A stretch of DNA of 64,000 nucleotides, taken from sequence record MH595538.1; one strand, 5' to 3'. The notes under the pieces were generated by a model. It worked only from the letters and a program-made list of their open reading frames with translations, searched no databases and had not been told where the DNA came from. Both the position numbers and the translations under genes were made by a program. Of the stretch, positions 4,568 through 59,200 are shown piece by piece (the first letter of the stretch is position 1; every line of letters starts with the position of its first letter).

Positions 4568-5461
4568 ATGACGCAAACATTAGATGATATTCGAGTACTT
4601 AAACGCAATGGTAAATTGGAACCAGTAGACCTGGATAAGATTCACCGCGTATTACATTGGGCTGCTGAAGGCCTAGCCGGTATCTCAATATCCGACGTCG
4701 AATTAAAAGCTCACGTACAGTTCTTTGACGGCATCGAGACTAAAGACATCCATGATCTGTTAGTCAAAGCGGCAGCTGAGCTCATTACCGCAGAAGAACC
4801 AGACTATCAGTACTTCGCTGCACGCCTAAAGCTATTCTCATTGCGCAAAGAAGCATACGGTCAGTTTGAACCACCCAAACTGGTTGACCACATTAAAAAC
4901 ATGATTGACATTGGCAAGTATGACATGGAAATACTTGGCATGTATACGCCAGAAGATTTTGAATACTATGAAGGCATCATCAATCACTGGAATGACATGA
5001 ATTATGCTTACGCAGCCATGGAACAATTCTCTGGTAAATACTTAGTCAAGAACCGTGATACTGGCCGTATATATGAGACCCCTCAATTTATCAATATCAT
5101 GGCCCCTTTGACCATGTTTGGTAAATATCCAGAGCCTCAGCGTCGTGAACTTGTAACGGATTTCTATCAAGCTTTGGTTGACGGTAAGTTATCTCTACCA
5201 ACACCTATTATGTCAGGTGTGCGAACACCTACTCGCCAATTCAGCAGCTGTACTCTTATCGATTGTGATGATACTCTAGAGTCTATTATTGCGACCACTG
5301 GCGCTATTGTCCGCTATGCGGCTAAGCGAGCAGGCATTGGTATCAACGCAGGTCGTATTCGCGGTATTGGCTCTCCTATCCGTGATGGAGAAGCAGTATC
5401 GACAGGGGAAGTTGGTTTCCTTAAATTGTTTAACTCGGCAGTGGGATGCTGCTCACAGGGT
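4568..5461 (+). CDS. nrdA: Ribonucleotide reductase class Ia alpha subunit, exon 1 (with ATP cone)
   Basis: ATP cone VLKRNGKLEPVDLDKI; PTPIMSGVRTPTRQFSSC; ends CSQG at the U of the splice site. Confidence 0.95.
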
Positions 5462-5915
5462 GAATATTGCCCCGCATAGAGGTAACTCTATGTTGTAAAC
5501 TCCTTTAATTGCTGGGACTCCCTAAAGCTTGCTTGCCTCTTTGAGGAGCCGAAAGGCAGAAACAAGTAGCAAGATGGGCTAAGACGATAGTAAGTCTAAG
5601 GTCTTGATAATGGGACATCAGCCTTCGCATCAAGTAATGTGATTCAACGACTATCGAAAGCTTAACCTGAGAAGAAATATCTCGGGGGATGATAAGCTTA
5701 CCTGTGGGTAAGTGAAGCGAGTAGAGTACGGCCCAAGCGGGTGGGTTCCCAATCCCTTAAATGGAAACAAGGAGGGTCCTTGATTTGGTAACAGAATCAA
5801 GGATCGTGATATAGTCTCGTCAGTCAAACTTATCCCTTTCGGTTTGACATTCTATGGAAACATAGAGCTGCAGGTAATGCTGCGGACTGGTCTAGCGAAC
5901 CAGTTGAAGATTACG
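5462..5915 (+). mobile_element. Group I intron (IA-like, no ORF, 454 nt) in nrdA
   Basis: Removal restores CSQG|GVRKGSAT and a 762-aa NrdA; 5' exon ends in U, intron ends in G; P1 GGGU/GCCC with U.G pair; core elements AATTGCTGGGA (P), CAACGACTA (R), GATATAGTCT (S). Confidence 0.93.
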
Positions 5916-7310
5916 GGTGTAAGAAAGGGATCAGCAACTACCTTTTTCCCGATATGGCACATCGAAGCCCGTCAATTAATGGAACTTAAAAACAACCGTG
6001 GTGTTGAAGAAAACCGTGTTCGTACTATGGACTATGGTTTCCAGATTAACCGTTTCTTCTACGAGCGCCTACAGCGTGGTAAGACTATTCGTTTATTCTG
6101 TCCTTCAGAAGTTCCTGGGCTATACGAAGCATTCTTCCAAGATCAAGCTGAGTTTGCAAGACTGTATGAAAAGTATGAAAAGATGCCTCACTTGCGTCAT
6201 CATGATGTTGCCGCTAAAGATCTATTCGGTACATTGATGCAGGAGCGCGCTGGTACAGGCCGTATCTATATACAGCACGTCGACCATACAAACATGTACG
6301 GTAATTTCATTGAAGAAGAAGCGCCAACGTTCATGTCTAACCTGTGTGTAGAAATCACACTGCCTACTAAGCCACTCAAGTTTGATAACGACCCAGAAGG
6401 TGAAATTGCTCTATGTACTTTAGCGGCATTTAACCTTGGCGTGATTACACTCGAAGAGTTCCCTCGTTTGGCTGAACTGGTTGTGCGTTTCCTAGATGCG
6501 CTATTAGACTATCAAGATTATCCTTCTGAAGCAGCACGTAATTCATCGATGAAGCGCCGTACTTTAGGGGTTGGCATCATCAACTATGCATACTGGATCG
6601 CTAAGAATGGATTTAAGTATTCAGACGGCAGTGCAAACAACATGACTCACCTTTGGATTGAGAACATGCAGTACAGCCTAATGAAAGCATCAGTTCAGTT
6701 GGCAAAAGAGAAAGGTGCTTGTCCTGCGTTCAATCAAACTAAGATGGCCAAAGGTATTCTCCCGATTGATAATTACAAGCGTGAAGTCGATGAACTGCAT
6801 ACCCAAGAACTAACTTGCGATTGGGAAGGTCTGCGTGCCGATATCGCTAAGTATGGTATGCGTAACTCTACTATGTCTGCGTTCATGCCTTCTGAAACAT
6901 CATCTCAGATTGCTAATGCAACAAACGGCATTGAGCCACCTAACAAGCTTATGACTCGTAAGGCATCTAAAGACGGTATTCTTTCCCAGGTTGTACCTGA
7001 CGTCGAGAACTTACGTGACTCTTATGAGCTTCGTTGGAACATGCCAGACAACATTGGTTATATTCACCTAGTTGGCATTATGCAGAAGTTCGTATGTCAG
7101 GCAATATCTGCGAATACGAACTACGATCCTGCTAAGTTCCCAGGCGGAAAAGTGCCAATGAACGTTATGCTTAAAGAACTCATGACGTGTTATAAATATG
7201 GTGTTAAAACTCTGTACTATCATAACACGGAAGACGGTAGCAACGACCCAGTAGCTAACGCTATTGAGAAAGAAGACGAAAGCTGCGGCGGTGGTGGCTG
7301 TAAGATTTAA
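5916..7310 (+). CDS. nrdA: Ribonucleotide reductase class Ia alpha subunit, exon 2
   Basis: SNLCVEI (thiyl-radical Cys), LCTL, PSETSSQ, KTLYY, C-terminal CGGGGCKI redox tail. Confidence 0.95.
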   Translation, partial: GVRKGSATTFFPIWHIEARQLMELKNNRGVEENRVRTMDYGFQINRFFYERLQRGKTIRLFCPSEVPGLYEAFFQDQAEFARLYEKYEKMPHLRHHDVAAKDLFGTLMQERAGTGRIYIQHVDHTNMYGNFIEEEAPTFMSNLCVEITLPTKPLKFDNDPEGEIALCTLAAFNLGVITLEEFPRLAELVVRFLDALLDYQDYPSEAARNSSMKRRTLGVGIINYAYWIAKNGFKYSDGSANNMTHLWIENMQYSLMKASVQLAKEKGACPAFNQTKMAKGILPIDNYKREVDELHTQELTCDWEGLRADIAKYGMRNSTMSAFMPSETSSQIANATNGIEPPNKLMTRKASKDGILSQVVPDVENLRDSYELRWNMPDNIGYIHLVGIMQKFVCQAISANTNYDPAKFPGGKVPMNVMLKELMTCYKYGVKTLYYHNTEDGSNDPVANAIEKEDESCGGGGCKI

Positions 7311-7321
7311 TCCGGCACCAT

Positions 7322-7350
7322 AAGGGGAGGTGTGAATACTTCCCCTTTTT
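7322..7350 (+). terminator. Intrinsic terminator after nrdA
   Basis: AAGGGGAG...CTTCCCCTT hairpin plus T run. Confidence 0.7.
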
Positions 7351-7387
7351 TTAACTTATTAAAAATTGAATTTATCAGGAGACTAAA

Positions 7388-8092
7388 GTGTCTAAACAGG
7401 TTATCTTCAAAGCAGGTCCAACAAACTACCTTAATCAACCAATGTTCTTCGGCGACTCTGTATCAACCGCTCGCTATGATCAGCAGACATATCCGTTCTT
7501 TGAAAAGCTTATCGAAAAGCAGCTTTCATTCTTTTGGCGACCTGAAGAAGTAGATGTCTCTGCAGACCGTCGCGATTGGCAAGGACTCTCTAAAGCGGAG
7601 AAACATATCTTTATCTCTAATCTTCAGTATCAGACACTGCTAGATTCTATCCAAGGCCGTAGCCCCAATATCGCATTCTTGCCAATCACCTCAGTACCTG
7701 AAGTAGAGACATGGATTGAAACCTGGTCATTCTCAGAAACGATTCACTCTCGTTCGTACACGCATATTATGCGTAACATCCTCACAGGTGAAGAAATGGA
7801 CGAGGTGTTTAATGGCATTACTACCATTCCTGAAATCATTGCTCGCGCCGAGCGTTTTGGCCGTGCTTACGAAGAACTGATTGAATGCAACAATGCTCTG
7901 CTGCAGTCTAAAGTAGACGTACCTAACCGAGCTGAATTGGAGCGTGAACAAAAACGTAAGTTCCTGCGTGCCCTTGTAACAGTAAACGGTTTAGAAGCTT
8001 TAGCATTCTACGTATCATTTGCATGCTCATGGGCATTTGCCGAACGTTCTATCATGGAAGGTAACGCTAAGATCATTAGACTCATCGCCCGT
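7388..8092 (+). CDS. nrdB: Ribonucleotide reductase class Ia beta subunit, exon 1
   Basis: [45 protein letters not shown]. Confidence 0.95.
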
Positions 8093-9230
8093 TAATATGG
8101 CGGCTTCATGGAGTGATCCATGAATGCACACCTCGTGAAATCAGGGGACTCCGGTAACAGGAAATCCTGAGGTTGCTCTATATCAAATCACCTCCATATA
8201 AAACGTTTTGGTTTTATAGCGAGAGGTTTTATATGAAATGATTTGTTATGGTGAAATATGGATGGATCATAAAGAAAGACCTGATGATTATATTGTCAGT
8301 AATTTTGGCAGGGTCTTTTCCAGAAAAAGTTGTATGATGTTAAAGCAGTCACTAACCAAGGCAGGATATCTAACTTATGGGAGTAGGTTAGGATCGGTCC
8401 ATCGTTTGATTGTGACGCATTATTTAGGACCCATTCCCAAAGGAATGGTAGTTAATCATAAAAATGGAATTAAGACAGATAACTGGATTGATAACCTAGA
8501 GATAACTACTCATTCTGCTAATACCCAACATGCTTACGATACGGGTTTAGCCAAAGGGAAAAAGGGCGCTGCTAACTCACAGGCTAAAGTAACAGAAGAA
8601 ATCATTCTTGATATTTATAAGATGTTCGAAGCTGGCTTTAGTAACCAAGACATTAGTAAAAGATACGGACTGCATGACCGCTACGTATCTCTCATAAGAC
8701 ATGGAAAAAGATGGAAGTATCTGTATGTAAGATACGGTAAGACTTTCCCACGATCGTATGAATTTGTCTTTCGAAAAGAACAGATTCTTATGGCAAGGGA
8801 ACTATTACTCAAGGGCCATAACAATTTAACTATTGCAATGGCAACCGGAATAGAGAAGTCTAACATATCCAGATTCCGACATGGAAAAATGAATGCTTGG
8901 TGTGAGTGGATGGCAATATACGACAGAGCAACCGCAACGACTATCGAAAGCTTAACTTGAGAAGAAATCTCTCGAGGGATGATAAGCTTACCCGCGGGTA
9001 AGTGAAGCGAGTAGAGTACAGCCACAAGCTTATGGTGGTCCTGAAAGGGATAGCGGAGAAATCCGTAATGGAAGCGCGAGGGGTCTCTTATCTGGTAACA
9101 GGGTAAGAGATCATGATATAGTCTGGCCCGGCCTTAACGGCCTATCTGTGAATACACAGGTATCCTAGGTAATGCTAGGAGCAGTATATGAAACTATACG
9201 GGTGTGTTTTGCGAACACACTGAACATACG
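8093..9230 (+). mobile_element. Group I intron (1138 nt) in nrdB carrying a homing endonuclease
   Basis: Removal restores IAR|DETLHL and a 374-aa NrdB; exon ends in U, intron ends in G; P1 CCGU/GCGG; R (CAACGACTA) and S (GATATAGTCT) elements. Confidence 0.93.
8238..8960 (+). CDS. Intron-encoded HNH homing endonuclease (NUMOD4-HNH plus C-terminal HTH-like DNA-binding region)
   Basis: YIVSNFGRV (NUMOD4), VHRLIVTHY, VNHKNGIKTDNWIDNLE (HNH), HSANTQHA. Confidence 0.9.
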   Translation: MICYGEIWMDHKERPDDYIVSNFGRVFSRKSCMMLKQSLTKAGYLTYGSRLGSVHRLIVTHYLGPIPKGMVVNHKNGIKTDNWIDNLEITTHSANTQHAYDTGLAKGKKGAANSQAKVTEEIILDIYKMFEAGFSNQDISKRYGLHDRYVSLIRHGKRWKYLYVRYGKTFPRSYEFVFRKEQILMARELLLKGHNNLTIAMATGIEKSNISRFRHGKMNAWCEWMAIYDRATATTIESLT

Positions 9231-9650
9231 GATGAAACTTTACATTTAGCCGGCACACAGTACATGATCAATGAACTGGCTAAAGGCGCTCAAGGAGCTG
9301 AATGGAAAGAGCTCTTTGAAGAAATGCGTGATGAGCTAGGTGAGATCATGCTAGCTATTGCCATGCAGGAAAAAGAGTGGGGTCGCTACCTGTTTAAAGA
9401 CGGTACGATGATCGGCCTTAACTCAAACATTATAGACCAGCTTATCGAGTACTTCTGTAATATCCGTTGTGCGGCTATTAAACTAGATAAGCCTTTTGCA
9501 GAACAGAAAAAGAATCCAATTGGATGGTTTAACTCTTGGATTCAATCCGCCGGTGTTCAAGTAGCACCGCAAGAAACAGAGCAGTCTTCTTACCTTGTCG
9601 GTCAAGTAGATTCTACTATTGATGAAGACGCTCTAGACATGGATCTTTAA
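9231..9650 (+). CDS. nrdB: Ribonucleotide reductase class Ia beta subunit, exon 2
   Basis: DETLH iron ligands, EKEWGRYLF, VAPQETEQSSYLVGQ with the conserved Tyr. Confidence 0.95.
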   Translation, partial: DETLHLAGTQYMINELAKGAQGAEWKELFEEMRDELGEIMLAIAMQEKEWGRYLFKDGTMIGLNSNIIDQLIEYFCNIRCAAIKLDKPFAEQKKNPIGWFNSWIQSAGVQVAPQETEQSSYLVGQVDSTIDEDALDMDL

Positions 9651-15120: not shown

Positions 15121-15462
15121 ATGAAAAAAGAAGTTCTAGATCTACTAGCAAAAGAAGGCGACGTTCTTAAATTCAAAATCCTGGGCTTTCCAGCACAGGG
15201 TAAGATGCGTATCAGTCTTGCGGCCAATAATAGCCTGGGTGCTGAAGACGTGACCGTTGCTCGTCCTAGCGATTTAAACGAAGCGAAGGTTGGCCAGATG
15301 GTTAAGATCATCGATGCCTATGGTGATGCGACCTACGTAACACTAGCCGACAAGAAAACTGCTAAGCCTGCAAAACCTGAAAGAACAGATTCTCGTAAAA
15401 ACGAACGCACTCCTAACTTTAAGCAGGTATCCGGTGTAGCTCGTGAAAAGCGTGAATGGTAA
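15121..15462 (+). CDS. Hypothetical basic protein
   Basis: GAG RBS, 113 aa, followed by palindrome at 15473-15497. Confidence 0.75.
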   Translation: MKKEVLDLLAKEGDVLKFKILGFPAQGKMRISLAANNSLGAEDVTVARPSDLNEAKVGQMVKIIDAYGDATYVTLADKKTAKPAKPERTDSRKNERTPNFKQVSGVAREKREW

Positions 15463-15525
15463 ACTGAACTTATAGAGACTGGCATTGCCAGTCTCTAATC
15501 AATATTTTATTTAAAGGATGATAGT

Positions 15526-16140
15526 ATGACTACAATCGTACTGGCTAGAGGAAACCTTGCATCAGATCGCATGTGCGTTGAATATACGAACCACTTCATG
15601 CATCTACGCAAGAAATCAGCGGTTGGAACAAATGGCACTGTGGGTATCGCTATTGGCGGTAAGGCACGCACTAATGAAATACTAGTTAAATTAGCTGACA
15701 TGTGTGAAGCCTTAGACTGGATTGATATTCATATCGAAGAAAATGAAGAAAAGTATAAATATCTTCGCGACGACGCACTGGCACTTTCTAAATCACTCGC
15801 TGAGTTACTAGATGAAGATTCACTCTTCGTTGTATATCGAAGTCGCGGTAAGGTCAAGATGTGTTATGCCGAAGGACATGTCGGTAATTCGGGAGATCTA
15901 GATCTAAAGTCATTGTTCGATGATTCATATCAGACATATGGGACCGGTGCAGCTATGGCGGAGTTTGAAATACGCCATCAGTACAGTAAAGGCATTGAAG
16001 ACTATGCTGTGCTGTTTGAAGTAGTAAGCTCTATTGAAGAATGCACCAGCAAAGAACACGATGTCATTTATGGCGAAGATCTTAAGGACATTGCCGAAGT
16101 TAAAGAAGTGGATATCAAGATCAAGGAGCTGTTGAAATGA
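15526..16140 (+). CDS. N-terminal-threonine (Ntn) protease, HslV/proteasome-beta-like
   Basis: Starts MTTIV; LASDR (Asp17 equivalent), RKK (Lys33 equivalent), AIGG, YGTGAAMA (GSG-equivalent loop), ECTS. Confidence 0.72.
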   Translation: MTTIVLARGNLASDRMCVEYTNHFMHLRKKSAVGTNGTVGIAIGGKARTNEILVKLADMCEALDWIDIHIEENEEKYKYLRDDALALSKSLAELLDEDSLFVVYRSRGKVKMCYAEGHVGNSGDLDLKSLFDDSYQTYGTGAAMAEFEIRHQYSKGIEDYAVLFEVVSSIEECTSKEHDVIYGEDLKDIAEVKEVDIKIKELLK

Positions 16141-16688
16141 ACAAACCGATTATCTTAAACGGCGATTACATTACGTATCCTACATCGACACTAGCGTATG
16201 GCAATACCGCTATACATGATGGTTACTGTCGAATGACGGAATACGGGATGTTGTTTGCAGATAGCGCAGCAGATCTTACCTACTTTAATGTCCTGCGTAA
16301 AGGTTATCCTATTGAAAACTATTTGACTCTAGCAGGACAGTATGATAAGCGCCGCTTTATACTGATCAATGATCAAGGAGACATCATTGTCCGTACGTTG
16401 ACTACCGGACCTAAGAAAAATAGTTTCAATGAAATAGTCAATGTACACTGCTCTGATATGAAGATGAAGATTGGCTTTTCTGAAAATGCACGCACCGTAG
16501 ATTTTATCTTAACTGGCCTGCATAAAGGAATGGACGGCCCTGAAATCGTAGATTTCCTCAAAGAGCATTCATGTATCGCTACTGACTTTAAAACCGAAAA
16601 GGTCAGTGCTATTGTCAAAAGACTCAAAAAGAAAAAGCTGGGTAACAAACATTTACCTGGCGCTAAATCACTTTTCTCTAATGAATAA
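16137..16688 (+). CDS. Partner of the Ntn protease; possible inactive Ntn-fold subunit
   Basis: ATGA overlap with the upstream gene; strand/helix order resembles Ntn fold but N-terminal Thr and GSG are absent. Confidence 0.5.
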   Translation: MNKPIILNGDYITYPTSTLAYGNTAIHDGYCRMTEYGMLFADSAADLTYFNVLRKGYPIENYLTLAGQYDKRRFILINDQGDIIVRTLTTGPKKNSFNEIVNVHCSDMKMKIGFSENARTVDFILTGLHKGMDGPEIVDFLKEHSCIATDFKTEKVSAIVKRLKKKKLGNKHLPGAKSLFSNE

Positions 16689-16715: not shown

Positions 16716-17633
16716 ATGTCAAACACTAAAGAATCTATCATCACTTACAAAACTGGTCCAGCTACAGGTACTTTTGTTCTACTGAACAACTCATTTGCCT
16801 TTCAGGTATTCGCCGCCTTCTGTGAAGAATGGACGGATGCCGACACAGGCATTGCGGCCATCCCAAAAGGCAATATCCATAAAGTCACACGGGATGATAA
16901 ACAGGGGCCGCTGACTGTCAATGACCTTAAAAATCCTAATGGGATCGACTCCTGTGTCTATATCAAGCCAACTCGTCGTGCTGATGGATCGCACTCCCTT
17001 GAAGTACAATTGCCAAATAGCGATAAAGGAATCATAGGCGGTAGTACTTGCTGTCGTGAAAATAACTGGGTTGGTTTCATATCTGTGACTTATGAAGCAG
17101 AATGGTCCAAGCATCGTGCCTTGTACAGTGCTGCTGATCAATGGGTTCTTAGTAATGCTCGTCGACATAAATTGACAGCGCCTAAGTCAAAAGCGATCTA
17201 TATGCGAAAGATCACGAATCCGGCACTGGCGCTACTGACGGCAGCTAAAGATAATCCTGTGTTCGTTACTGGCGATGGCCGTAACTACCAGGCATATACT
17301 TCGGAAAACGTCGCTATGTTGGCTAACGTCCAAGGCATCACTACTAGCAAGCTAGACTATTATAGTATCAGCTATTACGATAAAGGTATGTCGTATACTG
17401 GTGAGCAGCTTGCTCTTGTCAAAGCCATTGCTGATAAACCTCGTTTTGTAGAGTTGGCTGCTTTCACTCCTTATCAGGATAAGTTAGGCCATCCTAACTA
17501 TACTCTGATGCTGCCTAATGCAGAAAGCATTAAAGTAGAGGCGCACAGTGATGTAAGAATGGTCTATGCGACTAAGGAAGGCAAGCTACTTTACGTTGAT
17601 GTCCCAGCTGGCAATCTGTCTTTAATTAAATAA
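16716..17633 (+). CDS. Hypothetical protein (305 aa)
   Basis: AAGGAG RBS, long ORF. Confidence 0.8.
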   Translation: MSNTKESIITYKTGPATGTFVLLNNSFAFQVFAAFCEEWTDADTGIAAIPKGNIHKVTRDDKQGPLTVNDLKNPNGIDSCVYIKPTRRADGSHSLEVQLPNSDKGIIGGSTCCRENNWVGFISVTYEAEWSKHRALYSAADQWVLSNARRHKLTAPKSKAIYMRKITNPALALLTAAKDNPVFVTGDGRNYQAYTSENVAMLANVQGITTSKLDYYSISYYDKGMSYTGEQLALVKAIADKPRFVELAAFTPYQDKLGHPNYTLMLPNAESIKVEAHSDVRMVYATKEGKLLYVDVPAGNLSLIK

Positions 17634-17638
17634 AATAT

Positions 17639-17662
17639 AAAGGAGGGCAAATGCCCTCCTTT
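17639..17662. terminator. Bidirectional terminator
   Basis: AAAGGAGGGCA-AA-TGCCCTCCTTT between convergent genes. Confidence 0.75.
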
Positions 17663-17684
17663 ACTTATTTACTTTTTTATTTTG

Positions 17685-26119: not shown

Positions 26120-27625
26120 ATGAAAGACAGTAATGCAATTGATCGCTATAACCACAGCCTAGATATGCAATCACTTTTGCCAGATTCGCCACAGACAAAG
26201 ATATCGCTGATGAAATGGGCAGGTCCATCTGACTTTAGCTATGATTTAGGGTTCGCCTTTGCCTGCAAAAACCCTGACGTCAATGCGGTTACTGATAAGT
26301 TTCTTCAGAAACTATGTGCAATCTATGGCGAAGATAATGTACAGGTATGTGATCGCCGAGATACCGTGGTAGAAAAACACCCTAATCCTGAGTATAAGGA
26401 TCATGAAATGAAAATGATGTGGACATATGTGAAAACACCAAATGCTGTTTTTCGCTTCTCTGCTGAAAATCTAAGGGATGTAAGTCAAGAGCTCCATACC
26501 GCAGTTACGTGCGGTGCTGGCGGATGCAACATGCATGGCCGCGAACATATCTCCATGATCTGCGATGAGATGAATGAACATATCCAGGGCACGCAAATGA
26601 TGGACAATGAAGATAAGCCTATGCAGACGGTTAACTTTGTTACATTGACAATGGGCAATGACGGCAATATTCTTCCGATTACCGAGGTTATTAATAGCAA
26701 TGAGTTGATAGATTCTAAATCATACATGTATCCGTTTATCGACACCGAAATGATGTATGACTTATATCACGAAGGCACAGAAAATGTTCTTGTGTTATCT
26801 GGTAAATCCGGAACCGGGAAAACATCATTGGCAAGAAGAATCATTCTGGAGCTAGCGCGACGTGAGTCAAAGGGTATTGTTACGGACATGATGCATAACC
26901 AACCCTATCGTCCGGTAAGGAACGTAGTCTATATCAAGGACGAAAGTATCTTAAAGCTAGACGCTGTTTATGCACAGCTTCAGCAGCTCAAGCCTTTGGC
27001 TATCTTGCTTGACGACATGGATCAGGGACTGCAGCCCCGCTTCCTTGATGATATGTCTGAGGAGGTGAGAGAACTTGTCCTCAACGGTGCAAACAACGGA
27101 GTCAATAATTTTCAGGCAAACCATAATGAAACCATGAATAAGTTACTTTCTTATTCTGATGGCGCATTAAAGCATAAAACGCGCATTATCATTACAACGA
27201 ACCGAGGAGTAAAGAAAGGTAACATCGAACCAGCTTTAGTTCGTACTGGTCGTTGTTTTGAAGTACTGGATATTCCAGAGCTTACTTACGACGAGGCATT
27301 AGAGGTATGGACAGTACATCTCCAGAAGCCAACAGAAGGGTTTGTTGCTTTGTTTGGTGATGCTGAACAATCACCTACTATCTGCCAAGCTGAACTTAAG
27401 CGCGAGAGTGACTTATGGACCAAGGTCGGTAAGCGCGGGTTCCTGAAACGCAATGACATCTCTATTCGCAGCCACATCGGCGGCGATGCTGTTCGTCGCG
27501 CGCGACGTGATGAATACAACGAGGCGGTTGTCTTTGAAGATAAAAGCCAGGGCATGTCAAGACCAGGAGAACGACTTCCAATTGGCGGCGGATGGAACGC
27601 TATGAACGCCAAGCCTACTCACTAA
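26120..27625 (+). CDS. AAA+ ATPase (classical clade with SRH), paralog 1
   Basis: Walker A GKSGTGKT, Walker B ILLDD, sensor IIITTN, SRH ALVRTGRCF. Confidence 0.9.
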   Translation: MKDSNAIDRYNHSLDMQSLLPDSPQTKISLMKWAGPSDFSYDLGFAFACKNPDVNAVTDKFLQKLCAIYGEDNVQVCDRRDTVVEKHPNPEYKDHEMKMMWTYVKTPNAVFRFSAENLRDVSQELHTAVTCGAGGCNMHGREHISMICDEMNEHIQGTQMMDNEDKPMQTVNFVTLTMGNDGNILPITEVINSNELIDSKSYMYPFIDTEMMYDLYHEGTENVLVLSGKSGTGKTSLARRIILELARRESKGIVTDMMHNQPYRPVRNVVYIKDESILKLDAVYAQLQQLKPLAILLDDMDQGLQPRFLDDMSEEVRELVLNGANNGVNNFQANHNETMNKLLSYSDGALKHKTRIIITTNRGVKKGNIEPALVRTGRCFEVLDIPELTYDEALEVWTVHLQKPTEGFVALFGDAEQSPTICQAELKRESDLWTKVGKRGFLKRNDISIRSHIGGDAVRRARRDEYNEAVVFEDKSQGMSRPGERLPIGGGWNAMNAKPTH

Positions 27626-27632
27626 TTAAACC

Positions 27633-27654
27633 TACTGCCCCTGCAGGGGCAGTA
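27633..27654 (+). terminator. Hairpin between the AAA+ paralogs
   Basis: TACTGCCCCT-GC-AGGGGCAGTA. Confidence 0.6.
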
Positions 27655-27687
27655 ACTATTTATATTTAACCAAAAGAGAACATTAAT

Positions 27688-29001
27688 ATGTATATTAACG
27701 CAACACGCATTGAAGAAGTGATTGAAAAGCACAACAATCCCGAATCTTTAGAAATGATGAAAGAGATCATCTCTAACCCAGGCGATCTTCCTATGTTTCC
27801 TGTTTACTCGATGTTGGCGAGAAAGGCCTTGCCTGGAATGACATCACTCCCATTGCCGGATGTTACTATTAAAGGAACCCTAGGGGAAGTCCAGGAAAAG
27901 ATCGCGCGATACCTGGATATCGAGGACATGCCGGGTGCAGTAAATATAACGCCTGAATCAAGCAAGATGGGTGATTATAATGCCTATGGCTTTATCGACC
28001 ATCCATGGGGTACCGTGAGGCTAGAATGGGAAAACCATATAGTGGAAGGCATTCCATGCATCAAACTAGATATTAGCGCTGCTATTGGCTTTATTGAGTT
28101 CTCGGATCTTATGGTCGGAATGCTCAGAGATCTGCAGATGAAGCCAGCTAAAGCTAAGGAAGAAGTTGACCGTGACGGCGAAAAGAACTACAGGGTCGAT
28201 GTTATCTCTTTGAGTTATGAAAATAATGAACTAGGTGCAGAGCAATCTAAGCACATGACTGATGAGTTTAAAGACATTCGTTATGAGCTATATCCTCGTA
28301 TTAACGTTCCGTTAATGATGGATCAATATACGCATCCGGATTCAGCTAACGTACTGATTCTTGTCGGTCCCCCAGGTACAGGTAAGACATCACTGCTCCG
28401 ACGTGCTATCGCAGATGTTGCTGTTCGACGTGAACATGACATCACCGCGGTCTATATTAAGAACCCAGATATCCTTGTTAATGATGCCGTACTTAATAAG
28501 ATCGGTAAAGTTAACCCTGATTTCTTGATTCTAGATGACATGGATGAAGGCCTTAAATGCCGTGAAGTTCATGGCGAGAATCCTCTCATGAATAAACTGC
28601 TGTCATTCTCCAACGGTGCGATCAAAAACAATATCAAAATTATCATCACTACTAACCGCAGTATTGATAATAAAGGCGATATTGACGGTGCGCTGGTAAG
28701 ACGCGGTCGTTGTTTTAATGTGCTTAAACTACCTCGCTTAACTTATGGCGAAGCAATGAGTGCTTGGATTGACGCATTCAATCGTCCTGTCGAAGGCTTT
28801 CGTGAATTGTTCCGTGATGAAACGATAGAGATCGATCAAGCTACTTTGGCGGCTGAAGCTCTCCTCTACGGAGAATTCGGAGGATCAGATTACCTGCTGG
28901 ACCCTACTATTTCAGTACGTGAACAACTTGCCCCTGACACAGTTAATGTGGAGAAGGCGGCTCCTGCTATGATGGGAAAGCACCAGGCGACCCTGAACTA
29001 G
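27688..29001 (+). CDS. AAA+ ATPase, paralog 2 (0-frame product 437 aa)
   Basis: GPPGTGKT, LILDD, IIITTN, ALVRRGRCF. Confidence 0.9.
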   Translation: MYINATRIEEVIEKHNNPESLEMMKEIISNPGDLPMFPVYSMLARKALPGMTSLPLPDVTIKGTLGEVQEKIARYLDIEDMPGAVNITPESSKMGDYNAYGFIDHPWGTVRLEWENHIVEGIPCIKLDISAAIGFIEFSDLMVGMLRDLQMKPAKAKEEVDRDGEKNYRVDVISLSYENNELGAEQSKHMTDEFKDIRYELYPRINVPLMMDQYTHPDSANVLILVGPPGTGKTSLLRRAIADVAVRREHDITAVYIKNPDILVNDAVLNKIGKVNPDFLILDDMDEGLKCREVHGENPLMNKLLSFSNGAIKNNIKIIITTNRSIDNKGDIDGALVRRGRCFNVLKLPRLTYGEAMSAWIDAFNRPVEGFRELFRDETIEIDQATLAAEALLYGEFGGSDYLLDPTISVREQLAPDTVNVEKAAPAMMGKHQATLN

Positions 29002-42234: not shown

Positions 42235-42762
42235 ATGACCACATTGGTTGTTACAAAAGAAGCAGTCTATATAGACCATCGTGCAACCCGAGGACCTATG
42301 ATGGAAGACGGGCATGTCAAGTATGTTCGCTGGCCTAAAAAGGATCAGATTTTCTTCATCGTAGGCAAAGCTCAAACATCCAGGGACGCCATCAATTTCC
42401 TGATTACCGGGGAATGGAGGGATGAGGAAACCAAAAATAAATTCGTCGGTATGGAACATGGCTGCGAAGTCATCGTTTTAGACAGTGAAGGATTCGTTAA
42501 ATTTTCCGAACTGGAATGGAACGATGAAAAACAGACCGTAGTAGTTAAATCTATCGGAGATGTCTTTACTCCCGAAATGGAAAGCATTTATTGCTTAGGG
42601 TCTGGATCCCCATTTGCATACGGGGCTTATCATGCGAGCAATGGAAACATGGACATTGTGTATCGCACTATAAATATGATTAGTGGCTGTACCAGCGCAA
42701 GCTACGATCGAGTATGTCGCGCAACACGCAAAATTAAAACACATAAGGGTATCGCATGTTAA
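42235..42762 (+). CDS. Second N-terminal-threonine protease, HslV/proteasome-beta-like
   Basis: MTTLV, YIDHR, HVK, IVGK, LGSGSPFAYGA, GCTS. Confidence 0.75.
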   Translation: MTTLVVTKEAVYIDHRATRGPMMEDGHVKYVRWPKKDQIFFIVGKAQTSRDAINFLITGEWRDEETKNKFVGMEHGCEVIVLDSEGFVKFSELEWNDEKQTVVVKSIGDVFTPEMESIYCLGSGSPFAYGAYHASNGNMDIVYRTINMISGCTSASYDRVCRATRKIKTHKGIAC

Positions 42763-43352
42763 TTCTACTAGATCAAACGGTTTATGTCTTCGCCAATAAA
42801 AAGAATAACCCTCTAGATAAAGACAATGTCCTTTCGGTAAATGAAAGCGATAACTTCATTATGATTACTGAAGCTCCTAAGAAAATACAGGAACATACAA
42901 GACTACTGGATCAGCATGGCTTCAAGATAGAAGGAGAGATACGAAGAGAGCGTCGTGAAAATAAAAGGCGTCCCTTTAGTGATGAAGACATCGCATTTAC
43001 TGATGACTCAGACACCATTGTTTTCTGCTTAAATAAAAACCAAGACTTTCGTCATGGACTGCAGTTTCACGGAATTCTATTTTCTAAAGGAACCATTGCG
43101 TGCGCTAAGATAGCGGCAGGTGACACCAGTGCACAGTCGGCATTTGTAGACCGTTTCTTTAAAGGATGGGCTGTTGCTAAACTAATGGACAGCAAAGGCA
43201 AATTAAGGGATCTGGATGCCGATAAGATCATGACCGAGTTCTCTGAAGTGGCTAATAGTCAGTTGAAAGAACCTGCAAGGCTGATCGGCAAATATGTCTT
43301 TACTATCGACAAAGAAGGCAAGCCTAAATACGAGTTTGTGGAGATCAAGTAA
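42756..43352 (+). CDS. Partner of the second Ntn protease; possible inactive Ntn-fold subunit
   Basis: Overlapping start; similar size and secondary-structure order, no catalytic Thr. Confidence 0.5.
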   Translation: MLILLDQTVYVFANKKNNPLDKDNVLSVNESDNFIMITEAPKKIQEHTRLLDQHGFKIEGEIRRERRENKRRPFSDEDIAFTDDSDTIVFCLNKNQDFRHGLQFHGILFSKGTIACAKIAAGDTSAQSAFVDRFFKGWAVAKLMDSKGKLRDLDADKIMTEFSEVANSQLKEPARLIGKYVFTIDKEGKPKYEFVEIK

Positions 43353-53227: not shown

Positions 53228-56200
53228 TTAAGCTTTTCTTCCGTAAGCAAGACCCCATGCGGCATCTGCCCAAGCCCATACCATACCAGTGTCGTAATAT
53301 GCCCCACCAGATTCATACGTGGTTTTCAGTCCATATCCCTTTGTATGATATTCTAGTGGATCACTCGCAGCCTGTAGCGTATATGGATCTTTAGCAAAGA
53401 AGCATTTCGCTGAGGTGTTACCACGGCGATGCAAGTTACCTATCATCGCACTATACTGCTGATCTGCCATATGGAATGCAACTTCTGGTTTAAATGACAT
53501 CGGAGTAAAGGCCCCTCTGTTTCCGGTAACCAGGTGGTTATTTACGCCATAATGACTAAATCCGAATACCGACTTAAAGGCAATCAAGGTATACTCTTTT
53601 CCAAACACATTGTGGTCAATACCAGTCTGTGACTTAAGGGTAATCTTGTTTTCTGCCCATTCGATGACATCCGCAGTTCCTTGAGATTCATTCTTAGAGC
53701 GATAGACCTGTTGTCCGCCGTTGCCATTCATGATTCGCGTAAAGAACTGTGCTGGCTTAGAGCCGTCATGATGAATGATCATTGCTGCATCAGGGATGCC
53801 GCCAACATCAACATCGAGAACCAACTCTTCTTCTTTAACCGAAGTAAATATATCGGTTTCTTCAGTGAACGTATAGCCGGAGCTGCCGCCAGTGCCAACA
53901 CGATAACTAGGAACAATTAGCGTCTTATCAGGCTCATCATAGAAATCCTCAAAGATAGAGAGTCCGATTAACTGCTTGTTCTTGGTCCGGGTGTATACTA
54001 CATCACTCAACTTATTCTTAACATCGATGTTACGTATAACGTAATCCTTTCCTGCTATTGGCGTGTTAGGAATAAAGGCAATGAACTGCTGCCCATTTGC
54101 TTTAAAGGCCTTTACATATCCGCATCGAGCCGCTGAAAACGCCTGATGGGCAACCAAGGTCTCTGTTGCCGGATCGAACTTATAGATTTCGATGGTATCC
54201 GAATAAGTACTATCGGCCTTAGCTTCCCCTGTCGCTACGACATATATATTGCCTTCGACTTCAAACATGTCCATTGAGTCAATTGCCAAATCGCTGTCCG
54301 TAGTGGCAGCGGCAGTGATTTCATGCGTTGATTCATCCAATGTAAATATTTGAACATGATGATGGTCGACGGATCTTCCAGCGGCTAAATACACCTTATC
54401 GTTATACTCAAACCATACGGATCCTTTAAATGCCTTAGACGTACCGATTGTCTGCGTTGAAACAGAATCGCCGTTAGCATGGTCGATATGCACCAGGTAA
54501 CTATTAAAGACAATAGACCCTGAACCACACCCGAAGAAGAGATAAGAATGGTCTCCTTTACGATAATGCGAAACAGATCCAAGCTGTCCAACGCTGGTTA
54601 TGTGACTTACATGTATGTCGTAACTGTTATTGTAAGCACCAGAAGGTGTCTTCTCAATCTCAATGCCCTGATTACCACTTTGCATATAGCGAGCAATATA
54701 AATATATCCGCCATAGCCAAACATCGTCAATTTACCATAGATGTTTGAAGGACCAGAGTTAAAATCTTGCTGTGCAGTAATTATGCTGAAGCGATTATCC
54801 GGTATTGACCATGTCTTAATGGGAATGACCTTGGTTGCGTTCACATAGTTCTCTGCTTCCGCAATATAAAACGCACCATTATAAGAAAGACTCGCTGATG
54901 CATTGCAGTTAGTTTTACCATCTACCACAATAGGACTGACTGCGATATCCAGGGCATTAGCACGTTCATCATTCTCAGATGTTGTATCAAACACCAGGCC
55001 TTCAGAAACTAACTCTGTCGGTCTCTTGACGCCGAAGAAATGAGCATCGCTGTAAGCACCTTCTAGAGGAATAAGGTCCGTATTCGTCGCCGGGTCTATA
55101 AGGACCTCCTTGGGTCCTAAAGCATCCGTGATGTATTCCATAGTGAACGGCTTAAGGTCTACTTTATGGATGTATGCTTTCGTATCTGTTCCTGAAGAAA
55201 CATCCTGACTCAGGTTATATGTATCTCCCATATATAGATATTGAGAACCATCTTTGCCTTTAAAGAATTCTGTATGTCCAGAGCCTTGGGCAGGTAGAGA
55301 ATAGTCATACTCTATTTCTTCCGTATCCATATTAAGGGTCACAATCCAGTGGGTAGACGTATATGCATTTCGATCCGGATAGTTAGAACCCGGCATTCTT
55401 CCTGCATAACTGATCACCATGCGATTGCCAATCTTGACAGAATCTAAAGCATTGATTGAGATGTTAACTCGGGTGAAGCTGTTTCCATAAACCAGTTCTT
55501 GATGGATCAATTCTGGGGTTACTGTTCCAGAGACATGCATTTTATATATTCTCAGACTGCCCATTCGTCGATCAGCATTCGAATCTACATTACAGTGTAT
55601 GGCAAAGAAGATATGGCTTCCGTATCTAACAACAGTGGCCGCGTTAGCATACGGAGCTTGGACTGTTTGCAGGCCGGTTACGTCCAGGCCAGTGTCATTG
55701 TCTCCTCTGCCGCTGAAACGAGCAATAAATACATCTCTCGGATCAGTTGCATCTGCTCCAGTAGGAGCGTTACGATCAGGTTCTCTTGGGAATACGCCGA
55801 TGAACTCCTGAGAGTAAGTCGTATCCTCGATCTCAACAAACGCAGCATGACCTAGTTTATCGTCGCTGCTTGTACGGTCATCGACGATGTTTGTCAGTGT
55901 CTGGTTAACCGGGTCCCAGTAATCTACCATAATGTTACCTACGATAAAATCACGATAAGCCTGACCAGACCAGAAAATCCAAAATCCCCCGGCCTTAGAT
56001 CTAAATGCTGTTGACCCCATGTATCCATAGTCTGTCGCTCCTGTATGGACATTGTTCAACGCCCCTGTAGACATATCATAACGCCAAATGCCTCTGGGTT
56101 GCTGTGCATCCAAACTAGCCGCAGGAATAGCCAAGTCTACATAAGACTCTCCGTCTACTTGCATGGCAGAGACATCACCGATCGTCCTATAGTTCATCGT

Positions 56201-59200
56201 AGTCAACTGTGTAATTTGCTTGTTATCTTCCTCTAACTCGAACAGTCTTGAATCAGGAGCGGGGTCTGTAGAACCTGATTGCAAGCTCTCCGCTACCATG
56301 AACTGTATTGCACCAGTTTGATAATGGGACCAACTAGCAAAGCCACTACAGCCTTCAGCTTGAAATACGTTAACCAATTCAAACTGAGGAGAACCTGGAC
56401 TGAGATCAAACACGACCGATTTGTGACGGTATTTTACAAGCAGTCGGTCCTTACCTAGTCGTCTAAACGGAATTGCCCCTCCAGGCACTGGATCCCCATA
56501 GCGGTTGATAAACTCATCAAGAGCAAAGGGAGCTTCGAAAATACCTTCGTGGGTCGGTACAGTAATCTGGAATTTACCCATGTCTTGACCGGGACCGTCT
56601 CCTTCCGTGCTGTCGGTATTTAGATCCCCGTATATCAAAACATAGTCTTTAGAATCATTCGCCAATTGAAAGCTTCTCAAAGACTGAACCACATGTTTAT
56701 AATGAGTAACGGGATACAAGAACTCCTTGTCTGTGAAACTCTCTTGGAGCACATACGTGACGTTATACTCGTTTTCAGTAGGTGCTGGAAGAGCATTCTC
56801 GTTATATCCATGATGACAAATTACCAGAGTGGTAACAGCCCCGCGCTTGAAACTATTCACATAGACATTCTTGCCTTTAGGAACAACGCCCATGAAGCCA
56901 TAAAGTTCTTTGTTCTTAATGATAGAACCAGAGTTAGAAGCAATGCGATACTCGTTTAGGTATTGCTGATAAGTACCTGTGGCGCTACCTAGATGACCTG
57001 TGACCAGATAATCTTCATTAAAGGAATCTACGAGATGGATCGTACCGTCGAAATGATCGTCTACTACACTGAGGGCTTCGTTAGTGAAGGTACCCGTAGT
57101 AGAGAACGTATATGTCGATATACGATAATCGCCGATGACGCCGCCCATGATAAGAATCTCGCCGTCTCTAGCGATCGCAGAACAGCGGAAGTCTTTGGGA
57201 ACTTCCTCAGTAGAAGTAGCAATCAGATCGACATTGCCGTTGGCAGGATTATTCTTATACAGGCTAAAGTGCTTATGGACATGAACGATGTATTCATCTC
57301 CGTAAAGCGTCATTGTAAATACCTGGTCTAAATATTCCTGTTCTGCCTCACCAGTACCATAAGCGTAATTATCAGTGATGTCATAAGACGTCGTTAGCTT
57401 CCTTGAGCCTACGTAACGGTTAACGTCGATGCCGGAACACTCAGATTGCTTAAGTGCGAGAAACACATCTCGATGACTACTGGTATTGAAACCATCATCT
57501 CGAACAGAGTTGGTAAAACGCAAACCATTTTCCGTCCATTCGAACATAGTGTCAGCGGAAGAGTCATAAACTAACCATCCGTCTTCATCGAAGTCTGCTT
57601 TGAGATCATAGAGCGTGTCATCGCCCCATTGGCGAAGCATCAAGCGCATACCGTTCCATTTTGTGGAACCTGCAAAGACGATATCCGGAGAAAACCCAAA
57701 ATCTATCTCAGCGCCATTAACTCCGTTGTTGATCTGGTTCTTAACCGCGACATAATCAGAAGGACGCAATACATTATAGAAATCTATGAGGTCAGACGCC
57801 ATGAATGTATTTGCATCGCTAGGAGCATGCACAAATGGCTTATGTCCAAAGTTCCAATCCAGGATTTGATCATAATCGCTGGCACCTAATCCCAATGTCA
57901 CACATAGAGTCAAATCCCCCACTGCTTCCGATAAAGGAAGATTAACGGCAGTAGTGTCCAAGCTGCCATTAATTGATAGCGACCATGTATTAGCATCATA
58001 GTCAAAAAGGAATCCCAGGTAATATCCATTTCTATAATGTCCGGTATTTGAACCACCTGTTGCGTTACGAGTCAAGTTAACGCGAGACTGCTGACGACTA
58101 TCTAAGAAAGAAATAATTGGATATATAGACCCTGTTACGTTGGTTGTGATGTCGGTAGTGAACTTAGCCTCAAAATAATAGCGTCCTTTACTGCGATTAT
58201 TAGGAGCAGGAATCTTACAATCCAGAGTATAATATTGAACCCCAGGATCGCCGATTACTCGGACTAATTTACGGCCTCCTCTGCGCATTCTCGTCTTGGC
58301 GACCGTCTGGTTAGTATCTCCATTAGGCTCATGTACCTTTTCGGCAATAAAACGAGGGGCGATATTCAAAGGCGACATATACATGAGGACTTCGTCGTCG
58401 TCATGGTTAGAAGCCCAGTTGTTGATAGTGAAATTATCGGCGTTGTTAGCCCAGTTAACCCCAAAGGTATCGGCCCCTTCATTGTTACGTCCCGCTATGA
58501 CAAAGCTAGGTCCTGTAAAACCAGAGTAATCAGGAATTTGCAAGATATACTGGTCATTGAGCGTATCCCAGAATCCGAAGTGTAGAACATCATCGATAGC
58601 TTGGTCATGAATACAAATAGCACCATACATAGTGCCGTCAAACGACAATGCACTTGATCCTCCGTTGTATCCGATGTAAGAATATTTACCTTGTCCAAAA
58701 AGGGCTCTTGCTTCTTTGGCAGCTATCGAGCCTGGGTCCACTGATGTGTCACTCACATATTCTGTTTGGAAGCCGTTGATATATACTTTGATCGCTCGCT
58801 CAGACGTAGCCTCGTCCATGTCTATAACTACTTGAAGGTTAGTGACCGCGCCGGCATCACCAACACCCTCTGATCTAAAAAAGTGTCGATACAGCTTGGT
58901 GTCAGATCCTTCTTTAAAAGCACAGACTTCGATGAGGAGACTGTCGGTATCGTAATCGTTTCGAATATATACACCTTCAGCCAAAGATCCTTCAGCAGAA
59001 CCGGATCTTTCTCCTGCGAGCAATGGCATTGAAGCACGAGTGTCTGTAGGATTCAATTCGAAACAGAACCAATATGTTCTTTGGTTATTGATTTGTGTTG
59101 CTGTGTTATTGCGATAGAGGAAATAGACGGTATCGCGAATGTTGATTCCGTGAGTTATCTGATAACCTTTTTTAAGAGCGTGAGTAGTAGGGACCGTACG

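Follow-up and report, generated by a model that had tools for sequence, protein, structure and literature searches.

The question raised by two overlapping genes of Vibrio phage BONAISHI, ORF246 and ORF247, is whether a phage could build a proteasome-like peptidase from two different subunits, one of them catalytic and the other inactive. The window analyzed here, a stretch of 64,000 nucleotides, represents the final 64 kb of the BONAISHI genome (MH595538.1, record positions 224968-288967) and is identical to it in sequence. BONAISHI is a jumbo phage of 289 kb with the host Vibrio coralliilyticus. Its annotation includes chimallin (ORF71), which is the shell protein of the phage nucleus, a PhuZ tubulin (ORF59) and split phiKZ-type RNA polymerase subunits, and in a published phylogeny it is grouped with the nucleus-forming phages, the Chimalliviridae (PMC10587174; BONAISHI paper, PMC6207643). 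Both genes, as well as ORF279 and ORF280 which lie further downstream in the window, are listed as 'hypothetical protein' in the record. A first-pass annotation made from the sequence alone had proposed an active threonine subunit coupled to an inactive partner, and both open reading frames (ORFs) with their ATGA overlap are present as it had placed them (Table 1). Our judgement leans slightly towards the view that ORF246 and ORF247 are the catalytic and the non-catalytic subunit of a phage-made, HslV-like threonine peptidase.

The N-terminus of ORF246 reads MTTIV, and the protein contains D14, K29-K30, G44-G45 and G139-T140-G141. We aligned it with HslV from E. coli (NC_000913), ORF279, two orthologues of ORF246 and three annotated phage proteins of the 'peptidase HslV family' (pSal-SNUABM-04 ORF1, SPN3US gp001 and BUCT_49532 gp29). 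The motifs of ORF246 align with Thr1, Asp17 and Lys33 (K30) of HslV and with the 'AGG' and 'GSG' columns, GTG standing in the latter, which confirms the earlier assignment of these residues to the catalytic positions of N-terminal nucleophile (Ntn) enzymes. The sole invariant columns of the alignment are Met1, Thr2 (Thr1 of HslV), Asp18 (Asp17), the Gly of the AGG loop, both Gly of G-S/T-G and the Ala that follows. The numbering of ORF246 is offset (D14 and K30 compared to Asp17 and Lys33) because its first hairpin, S1-S2, is four residues shorter. T2, D14, K30, G45 and GTG are invariant across ORF246 and its two distant orthologues. Thr2 is kept in all three family members (MTT, MTT, MTC) and lies on HslV Thr1 both by sequence and by structure. 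The GG of the Gly-rich loop (44-45) is present, and the second motif is G-T-G and not G-S-G in all three members, where Thr takes the place of Ser124/129 with the hydroxyl group kept.

A hidden Markov model (HMM) was built from six HslV-family proteins, with the ORF246-type sequences excluded, and run on the complete set of 1503 BONAISHI ORFs with 50 or more amino acids. ORF279 ranked first and ORF246 second (E 1.4e-3, matching end to end from the initiator Met), followed by the added orthologues met_N (E 0.012) and pir_N (E 0.25), and unrelated ORFs appeared from E 1.2. By this model the whole BONAISHI genome contains exactly two HslV-like genes, ORF246 and ORF279. The 'peptidase HslV family' of PHROG (PHROG 1040) is matched by ORF246 with E 0.009. 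ORF246 gave no match to Pfam PF00227 at E up to 1 and thus stays below the curated family threshold, and PDB sequence and profile searches with it were without match. Word-based searches of 5.8 billion proteins with ORF246, ORF247 and ORF279 returned the query proteins only, and pattern scans of IMG/VR and JGI metagenomes with the family alignments found no further relatives.

Structure prediction points in the same direction. The ESM Atlas model of ORF246 has a predicted template modelling score (pTM) of 0.84; its neighbours are viral 'Proteasome subunit' clusters (feature matches) and HslV-like clusters with template modelling (TM) scores of 0.63-0.67. An AlphaFold2 (AF2) model from a three-sequence alignment has a predicted local distance difference test (pLDDT) value of 58. 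With this model Foldseek, which the first-pass annotation had suggested as a check, retrieved HslV and 20S chains only, an HslV chain being the best match (3ty6_C, E 5.5e-4). In VIA-align three HslV structures lead (Z 9.2, 9.2 and 8.7) before 20S and Anbu subunits, and in the alignment to E. coli HslV (Z 9.2) residue 2 of the model is placed on chain residue 1. Compared to HslV there are two large insertions, at residues of about 60-95 and 114-133, amounting to about 30-40 extra residues. From alignment and predicted model we place ORF246 in the HslV/proteasome-beta lineage, as a strongly diverged member whose catalytic set appears complete save for Thr instead of the Ser of GSG. A prohead protease, as another candidate function of ORF246, was ruled out; in these phages the prohead protease of the T4 gp21 type is encoded by another gene (pir03 ORF42).

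The second protein, ORF247, starts with MNK and its relatives with MSK and MNK. There is neither a Thr, Ser or Cys nucleophile nor a propeptide, which suggests a catalytically dead Ntn protein, and an invariant Lys3 of the family is found at the structural position of Thr1. ORF247 matches no Pfam or PHROG family and its ESM model is poor. HMMER, run in full on 1.84 billion representatives, yielded a single relative, P0004 (E 1.2e-9), and tblastn a second one in the Vibrio phages vB_pir03 (pir03) and C-ZP2022. The AF2 model, again from a three-sequence alignment, reached pLDDT 78 and pTM 0.77, and three out of five models had pLDDT values of at least 71.6. Its order of six strands, two helices, four strands, two helices, one strand and one helix is the Ntn order. 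Searched against the PDB with Foldseek, the model has nothing but 20S subunits in the top ranks, with a weak E of 7e-3. With VIA-align the Foldseek candidates scored up to Z 7.9, residues 2-163 of ORF247 being aligned, and the score fell sharply to 2.1 at non-Ntn chains. In a search independent of Foldseek, covering 48,161 PDB representative chains, ranks 1-43 are all of the Ntn fold. The leading matches are 20S beta and alpha, Connectase, Anbu, HslV and BPH (Z 6.3-7.9), and after the proteasome clan follow acid ceramidase, NAAA, penicillin acylases, TANGO2 and PurO. A shape search of the Atlas with ORF247 found a viral '20S proteasome' cluster (TM 0.58/0.71). While one must keep in mind that VIA Z-scores below 8 are in a range for which the tool warns of non-specific matches, the uniform match list and the full-length coverage make a predicted Ntn/proteasome-like fold of ORF247 credible. 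The Ntn-like strand and helix order without catalytic residues, read at first from the sequence, is thus borne out by the AF2 model and the search of the 48,161 chains.

Residues 1-3 of ORF247 align to residue 1-2 of beta-type chains. The alignments to alpha chains (1q5q_A, 7qve_X, 8qyj_D) begin at chain residue 26-35, which indicates that ORF247 lacks the alpha-type N-terminal extension, helix H0, with its role in ring gating and activator docking. The proposed analogy to the alpha/beta division of the 20S proteasome therefore stands as far as an active and an inactive Ntn subunit are concerned; it is an analogy by role and not by form. Profile-profile comparisons among the ORF246 family, the ORF247 family, ORF279, ORF280, the HslV alignment and pSal-SNUABM-04 (pSal) ORF117 gave nothing significant, so that the predicted structure is what relates the partner to HslV.

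The two genes are conserved as a cassette, which was found again in the Vibrio phages pir03 and C-ZP2022 and on one metagenome contig. In pir03 the ORF247 homologue of 177 amino acids is preceded by a gene of 193 amino acids with the start MTTIY and an overlap of 4 nucleotides. On the metagenome contig (Logan SRR17165166_154367, 76 kb) a gene of 204 amino acids with the start MTCVV comes before P0004 and overlaps it by 1 nucleotide. In BONAISHI, pir03 and the contig the ribosome-binding site is located within the upstream gene; in BONAISHI it is AAGGAG at the end of ORF246, 8 nucleotides before the ATG of ORF247. The orthologous pairs are 20-29% identical to BONAISHI, with gene order, coupling and the Thr/Asp/Lys/GG/GTG residues retained. 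The divergence of the ORF246/ORF247 family is such that word-based and BLAST searches reach three other genomes only, namely pir03, C-ZP2022 and the metagenome contig.

Similar pairs were observed in more distant phages. The best matches in a BFVD search with the ORF247 model are uncharacterized proteins of about 180 amino acids from other phiKZ-like jumbo phages: Bosolaphorus (172 amino acids, E 2e-7, TM 0.68/0.71), PhiEaH1 and RSF1, as well as Derbicus, Huxley and Special G (182 amino acids each). In pSal, a Machinavirus, ORF116 (175 amino acids, start MTTF, PHROG 23394/1040) overlaps ORF117 (182 amino acids, PHROG 25529) by 4 nucleotides. In Derbicus gp123 ('peptidase HslV family', PHROG 1040, E 3e-24) is followed 2 nucleotides on by gp124 (182 amino acids, PHROG 8172). 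Among the Machina-type and Derbicus-type records, which are phages of Erwinia, Salmonella and Cronobacter, the partner is found directly downstream in 10 out of 10 and 9 out of 9 records having an HslV-like gene. Derbicus gp123 matches the pir03 orthologue of ORF246 (E 5e-6), and gp124 matches pSal ORF117 (E 4e-5). PHROGs 8172 and 25529, to which the partners belong, are annotated as function-unknown, and Pfam gave no match for the four Ntn-pair proteins of BONAISHI or their phage relatives. HslV-family genes also occur as standalone genes without a same-sized neighbour, as observed for SPN3US gp001, pSal ORF1 and gp29 of a 49-kb Klebsiella phage. As another candidate pair we considered gp117 and gp118 of phage RAY, two genes of 179 amino acids each after the HslU homologue gp116, and rejected it; BLASTP gave no match to the HslV-like and partner proteins compared. 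In Bosolaphorus and Special G, which are relatives of RAY, the BFVD matches of the ORF247 model must be genes other than the counterparts of gp117 and gp118.

These observations allow for a possible mechanism. Removal of Met1 of ORF246 by the host methionine aminopeptidase would expose Thr as the N-terminal nucleophile, and Asp14 and Lys30 would complete the active site in the fashion of HslV. Due to translational coupling ORF247 would be made in step with ORF246 and in stoichiometric amounts. As ORF247 is predicted to share the four-layer alpha-beta-beta-alpha fold while the nucleophile is absent, and as its synthesis appears to be coupled, it could represent an obligate structural or regulatory pseudo-enzyme subunit which co-assembles with ORF246 in mixed or stacked rings. 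With no HslU from the phage, such a particle might act alone on peptides and unfolded proteins, or it might borrow the HslU of the host.

The last aspect is related to the occurrence of HslU homologues next to the pair in other phages. ORF121 of pSal, annotated as 'putative DnaA protein', is an HslU homologue (E 1e-26 to E. coli HslU) four genes downstream of ORF116/ORF117 and 2.4 kb away; this contradicts the pSal-SNUABM-04 paper, which reports that no HslU is encoded. In Derbicus, Huxley and Machina an HslU homologue is located 1.3-2.1 kb from the pair. We searched the whole BONAISHI genome by tblastn with three HslU proteins (E. coli HslU, RAY gp116 and pSal ORF121) and with an HMM of them, and found no HslU homologue but P-loop noise only (E at least 0.059). 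These HslU-based searches did not reveal a Clp/HslU-type ATPase either; ClpX itself was not searched for. The BONAISHI paper mentions no ATPase in its text and includes no virion proteomics (PMC6207643). The lack of HslU makes the use of host HslU or an ATP-independent action more plausible. The two ClpP-like genes of the phage, with no Clp/HslU-type ATPase in these searches, would fit a habit of borrowing host unfoldases. The genes hslVU are standard in gamma-proteobacteria.

Several points weigh against the proposed two-subunit peptidase. HslV is a homo-oligomer, and a dead partner would hence be unnecessary for function. Ser129/124 is replaced by Thr in ORF246, the sequence signals of ORF246 towards HslV are weak (none in Pfam, E 0.009 in PHROG, none in PDB profiles), and its AF2 model is of low confidence with pLDDT 58. 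The fold of ORF247 was derived from a model with a three-sequence alignment, with Z below 8 in the possibly non-specific range, and only phage name and length served to equate its BFVD matches with the partner genes that follow HslV-like genes. The absence of HslU from the BONAISHI genome, as seen with both tblastn and HMM, has to be added. Host proteins are largely excluded from the chimallivirus phage nucleus. For RAY the HslU homologue gp116 was located inside the phage nucleus by GFP fusion (bioRxiv 10.1101/2023.02.24.529968). If the BONAISHI pair were nuclear too, host HslU might not reach it.

The first-pass annotation had gone further and combined both Ntn pairs of the window with two AAA+ ATPases of the type with a second region of homology (SRH) into a phage-encoded, ATP-dependent proteasome-like machine. 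The two ATPases do exist and were rightly described as SRH-type: ORF258 and ORF259 have a classical AAA domain (PF00004, E 1e-10 and 2e-12), and in the PDB they match VAT, Cdc48 and Rpt subunits best, which is in agreement with such a machine. So is a related AAA gene at a distance of 1-6 kb from the pair in Derbicus (gp119) and pir03, weak evidence since the genomes are syntenic. We nevertheless consider the machine very improbable. The nearest phage relatives of the two proteins, the pir03 AAA protein (E 6e-9 to ORF259) and Derbicus gp119 (E 1e-27 to the pir03 AAA protein), contain a BCS1_N domain above the Pfam threshold, which argues for Bcs1-type AAA proteins and not for proteasomal unfoldases. 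Derbicus gp119 also seems, judged by eye, to have a hydrophobic segment at its N-terminus. The C-termini of ORF258 and ORF259 (...KPTH and ...ATLN) lack the HbYX docking motif, and when the sequence past Walker A was inspected by eye, a pore loop of the aromatic-hydrophobic-Gly type was not seen. Between the first pair and these genes, which follow downstream, there are 10 kb with four opposite-strand genes; the distance to the second pair is 13 kb, again with opposite-strand genes between. Their family is common in other phage groups, with 131 phage records including 48-kb Vibrio phages, Campylobacter phages and Pseudomonas phages, which were not checked for the pair. In those relatives that have a dedicated ATPase beside the pair, this ATPase is HslU. 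As far as the sequences tell, a link between ORF258/ORF259 and the Ntn pair is not supported.

An unlikely explanation, yet one to be taken more seriously than this machine, is that ORF246 alone forms a homo-oligomeric, HslV-like ring which uses host HslU. ORF247 would then be a pseudo-enzyme regulator or decoy outside the ring, for example capping it, poisoning host HslV or titrating host HslU. The homo-oligomeric nature of HslV itself, the lack of an HslU homologue in BONAISHI, the ClpP-like genes without a Clp/HslU-type ATPase in that search, and the standalone HslV-family genes of SPN3US, pSal (ORF1) and 49-kb Klebsiella phages would all be in agreement with it. Adjacency, translational coupling and co-conservation in three lineages fit stoichiometric co-assembly better than a homo-oligomer with a decoy, and the complete subunit fold retained by ORF247 (residues 2-163) is likewise at odds with a mere regulator. 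Quite improbable in our view is a monomeric or dimeric Ntn enzyme, either a site-specific transpeptidase or ligase similar to Connectase or an amidohydrolase, that processes a particular phage or host protein. A hint towards such an enzyme arises from the Connectase structures among the best matches of ORF247 (6zw0 and 8jtu, Z 7.3 and 6.9), from the many non-ring enzymes in the Ntn superfamily, which also occur in the match list of ORF247, and from the insertions of ORF246, which could disturb ring contacts. Against this, the best matches of ORF246 are HslV chains from end to end, its catalytic set is that of HslV and 20S subunits, and relatives of the pair adjoin HslU homologues.

The second pair of the window, ORF279 and ORF280, gives a mixed picture. 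The sequence of ORF279 is clearly HslV-like, with the start MTTLV, D14, GSG and a PDB match to HslV (E 7e-4); the only Lys near Lys33 aligns one column early. For ORF280 no family, profile or structural signal and no phage homologues were found, and its ESM model is poor (pLDDT 0.38) without meaningful neighbours. The recurrence of the two-gene layout, as claimed in the first reading, holds insofar as an HslV-like gene is overlapped by a gene in the position of a partner; sequence similarity between the two pairs is not detectable.

Table 1. Coordinates of the discussed features in the 64,000-nucleotide window (position 1 is the first letter of the window).
Feature	Coordinates	Strand	Description
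ORF245	15121..15462	+	113 amino acids, function unassigned; BLASTP matches upstream of the pair in pir03 (E 2e-7) and on the metagenome contig (E 1e-4)
Hairpin with T-rich tract	15474..15512	+	10-bp stem (15474-15496) and T-rich tract (15504-15512) between ORF245 and ORF246
ORF246	15526..16140	+	204 amino acids; divergent Ntn peptidase subunit of HslV/proteasome-beta type, predicted catalytic
ORF247	16137..16688	+	183 amino acids; non-catalytic partner, Ntn/proteasome fold in the predicted model
ORF248	16716..17633	+	305 amino acids, no assigned function; start 28 nucleotides past ORF247
Bidirectional intrinsic terminator	17638..17663	.	Between the convergent ORF248 and ORF249c; from terminator scan
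ORF258/ORF259	26120..29001		Tandem paralogues, 39% identity; classical AAA domain; Walker B motif with DD in place of DE
ORF279	42235..42762	+	175 amino acids; second, less divergent HslV-like paralogue; PHROG 1040 E 1e-10; HMM E 4.9e-8
ORF280	42756..43352	+	198 amino acids; 7-nucleotide overlap with ORF279; partner-like position
Split ribonucleotide reductase genes	4568..9650		Two ORFs annotated as alpha subunit (4568-5479, 5877-7310) and two as beta subunit (7388-8095, 9264-9650)
HNH endonuclease gene	8238..8960		Between the two beta-subunit ORFs
Long ORF	53228..59254	-	2008 amino acids; close to the end of the BONAISHI genome

The surroundings of the first pair show a conserved arrangement upstream. 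ORF245 has no Pfam or PHROG match, and according to BLASTP and alignment it is kept just upstream of the pair in all three lineages, i.e. BONAISHI, pir03 and the metagenome contig. The hairpin and T-rich tract that follow it look like a terminator or attenuator. A simple terminator scan did not call this hairpin because the T-run begins 8 nucleotides past the stem; pir03 and the metagenome contig have an equivalent GC-rich hairpin with a T-run at the same spot between the upstream gene and the pair. The conserved ORF245 with its hairpin suggests a separate and possibly abundant transcript that ends or is attenuated before the peptidase genes. Downstream, judged by position, ORF248 is probably co-transcribed with the pair, and the terminator behind it is probably the end of an ORF246-248 transcription unit. 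ORF248 is not conserved beside the pair in pir03 or the metagenome contig.

Some further observations concern the genome in general. ORF86 and ORF87 of BONAISHI are adjacent, abutting ClpP-like genes outside of the window (MH595538.1 87276-88339), one of which is only weakly ClpP-like (reported E 5e-5). They are a possible second candidate for a 'paired subunit' protease of this phage. The HNH endonuclease gene between the ribonucleotide reductase beta pieces suggests interruption by a homing element or intron. Close to the BONAISHI genome end lies the longest feature of Table 1 on the minus strand.

The annotation 'peptidase HslV family' is known for phages, with 62 phage records matching one member of PHROG 1040, and phage HslU homologues have been annotated as well. 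The statement of the first-pass annotation that no functional description exists is correct in that the searchable literature holds no paper on the function of phage HslV-family genes or on a paired dead subunit; the novelty implied by it was overstated. A large survey of jumbo phages covers ClpP and other peptidases and not HslV (PMC7824862). The conserved pair of an active and a dead Ntn gene appears to be undescribed, with the BONAISHI form being extremely divergent and without a phage HslU, and the Ntn fold of the partners in PHROGs 8172 and 25529 seems to be unrecognized so far. ORF247 and its relatives are, by their predicted models, probable candidates for proteasome-fold pseudo-enzymes among unannotated families, and by way of the BFVD structural matches the same probably applies to PHROGs 8172 and 25529.

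In the textbook view HslV, a homo-oligomer, stands for the ancestor-like form of the proteasome, and a division of the subunits into active and inactive ones is otherwise characteristic of the 20S particles of archaea, actinobacteria and eukaryotes. One may speculate that a two-subunit proteasome-like particle, built from an HslV-type catalytic and an obligate dead Ntn subunit, arose independently in nucleus-forming jumbo phages in parallel to the alpha/beta split of the 20S proteasome, and that in BONAISHI-type phages it works without a phage unfoldase, perhaps inside or at the phage nucleus. We regard this extended proposal as tentative and rather doubtful. If true, the viral pair would represent a second, independent case of the proteasome subunit split, and chimallin-encoding phages would own a compartmentalized peptidase.

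Compared to known systems, Anbu, BPH and Connectase resemble the BONAISHI proteins in being single-domain members of the proteasome clan that are not tied to a proteasomal AAA protein, and they are among the top structural matches of ORF247 (Anbu also of ORF246). Anbu and BPH are homo-oligomers and Connectase is a monomeric ligase, whereas ORF246 and ORF247 are a predicted active/inactive gene pair. To our knowledge none of the three is known as such a pair or encoded by a phage. With the phage 'peptidase HslV family' of PHROG 1040 (SPN3US gp001, Derbicus gp123, pSal ORF1 and ORF116) ORF246 has the viral setting in common, mostly that of chimallin-encoding jumbo phages, and a partner of about 182 amino acids follows Derbicus gp123 and pSal ORF116 in the same way as ORF247 follows ORF246. 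The versions from Erwinia and Salmonella phages have an HslU homologue nearby, while for the BONAISHI pair there is none in the genome.

Bacterial HslV (ClpQ, the peptidase of HslVU; MEROPS T1B; E. coli structures 1NED and 4G4E) shares fold and size class with ORF246, further the MTT(I/L)V start, Thr1 by predicted removal of Met, Asp17 and Lys33, and it is the best structural match (Z 9.2). HslV is a homo-dodecamer encoded beside hslU. ORF246 in contrast is coupled to a dead subunit of the same fold in a genome lacking HslU, has GTG instead of GSG, falls below the PF00227 threshold and contains two insertions. The 20S proteasome differs in the N-terminal extension of its alpha subunits, which ORF247 lacks, and in a propeptide, which ORF246 lacks, and sequence similarity is not detectable. 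In its organization it is still close to the phage pair: a catalytic Thr1 subunit is combined with a subunit of the same fold that has no nucleophile, as would be the case for ORF246 and ORF247, and the latter has its top PDB matches among 20S beta subunits.

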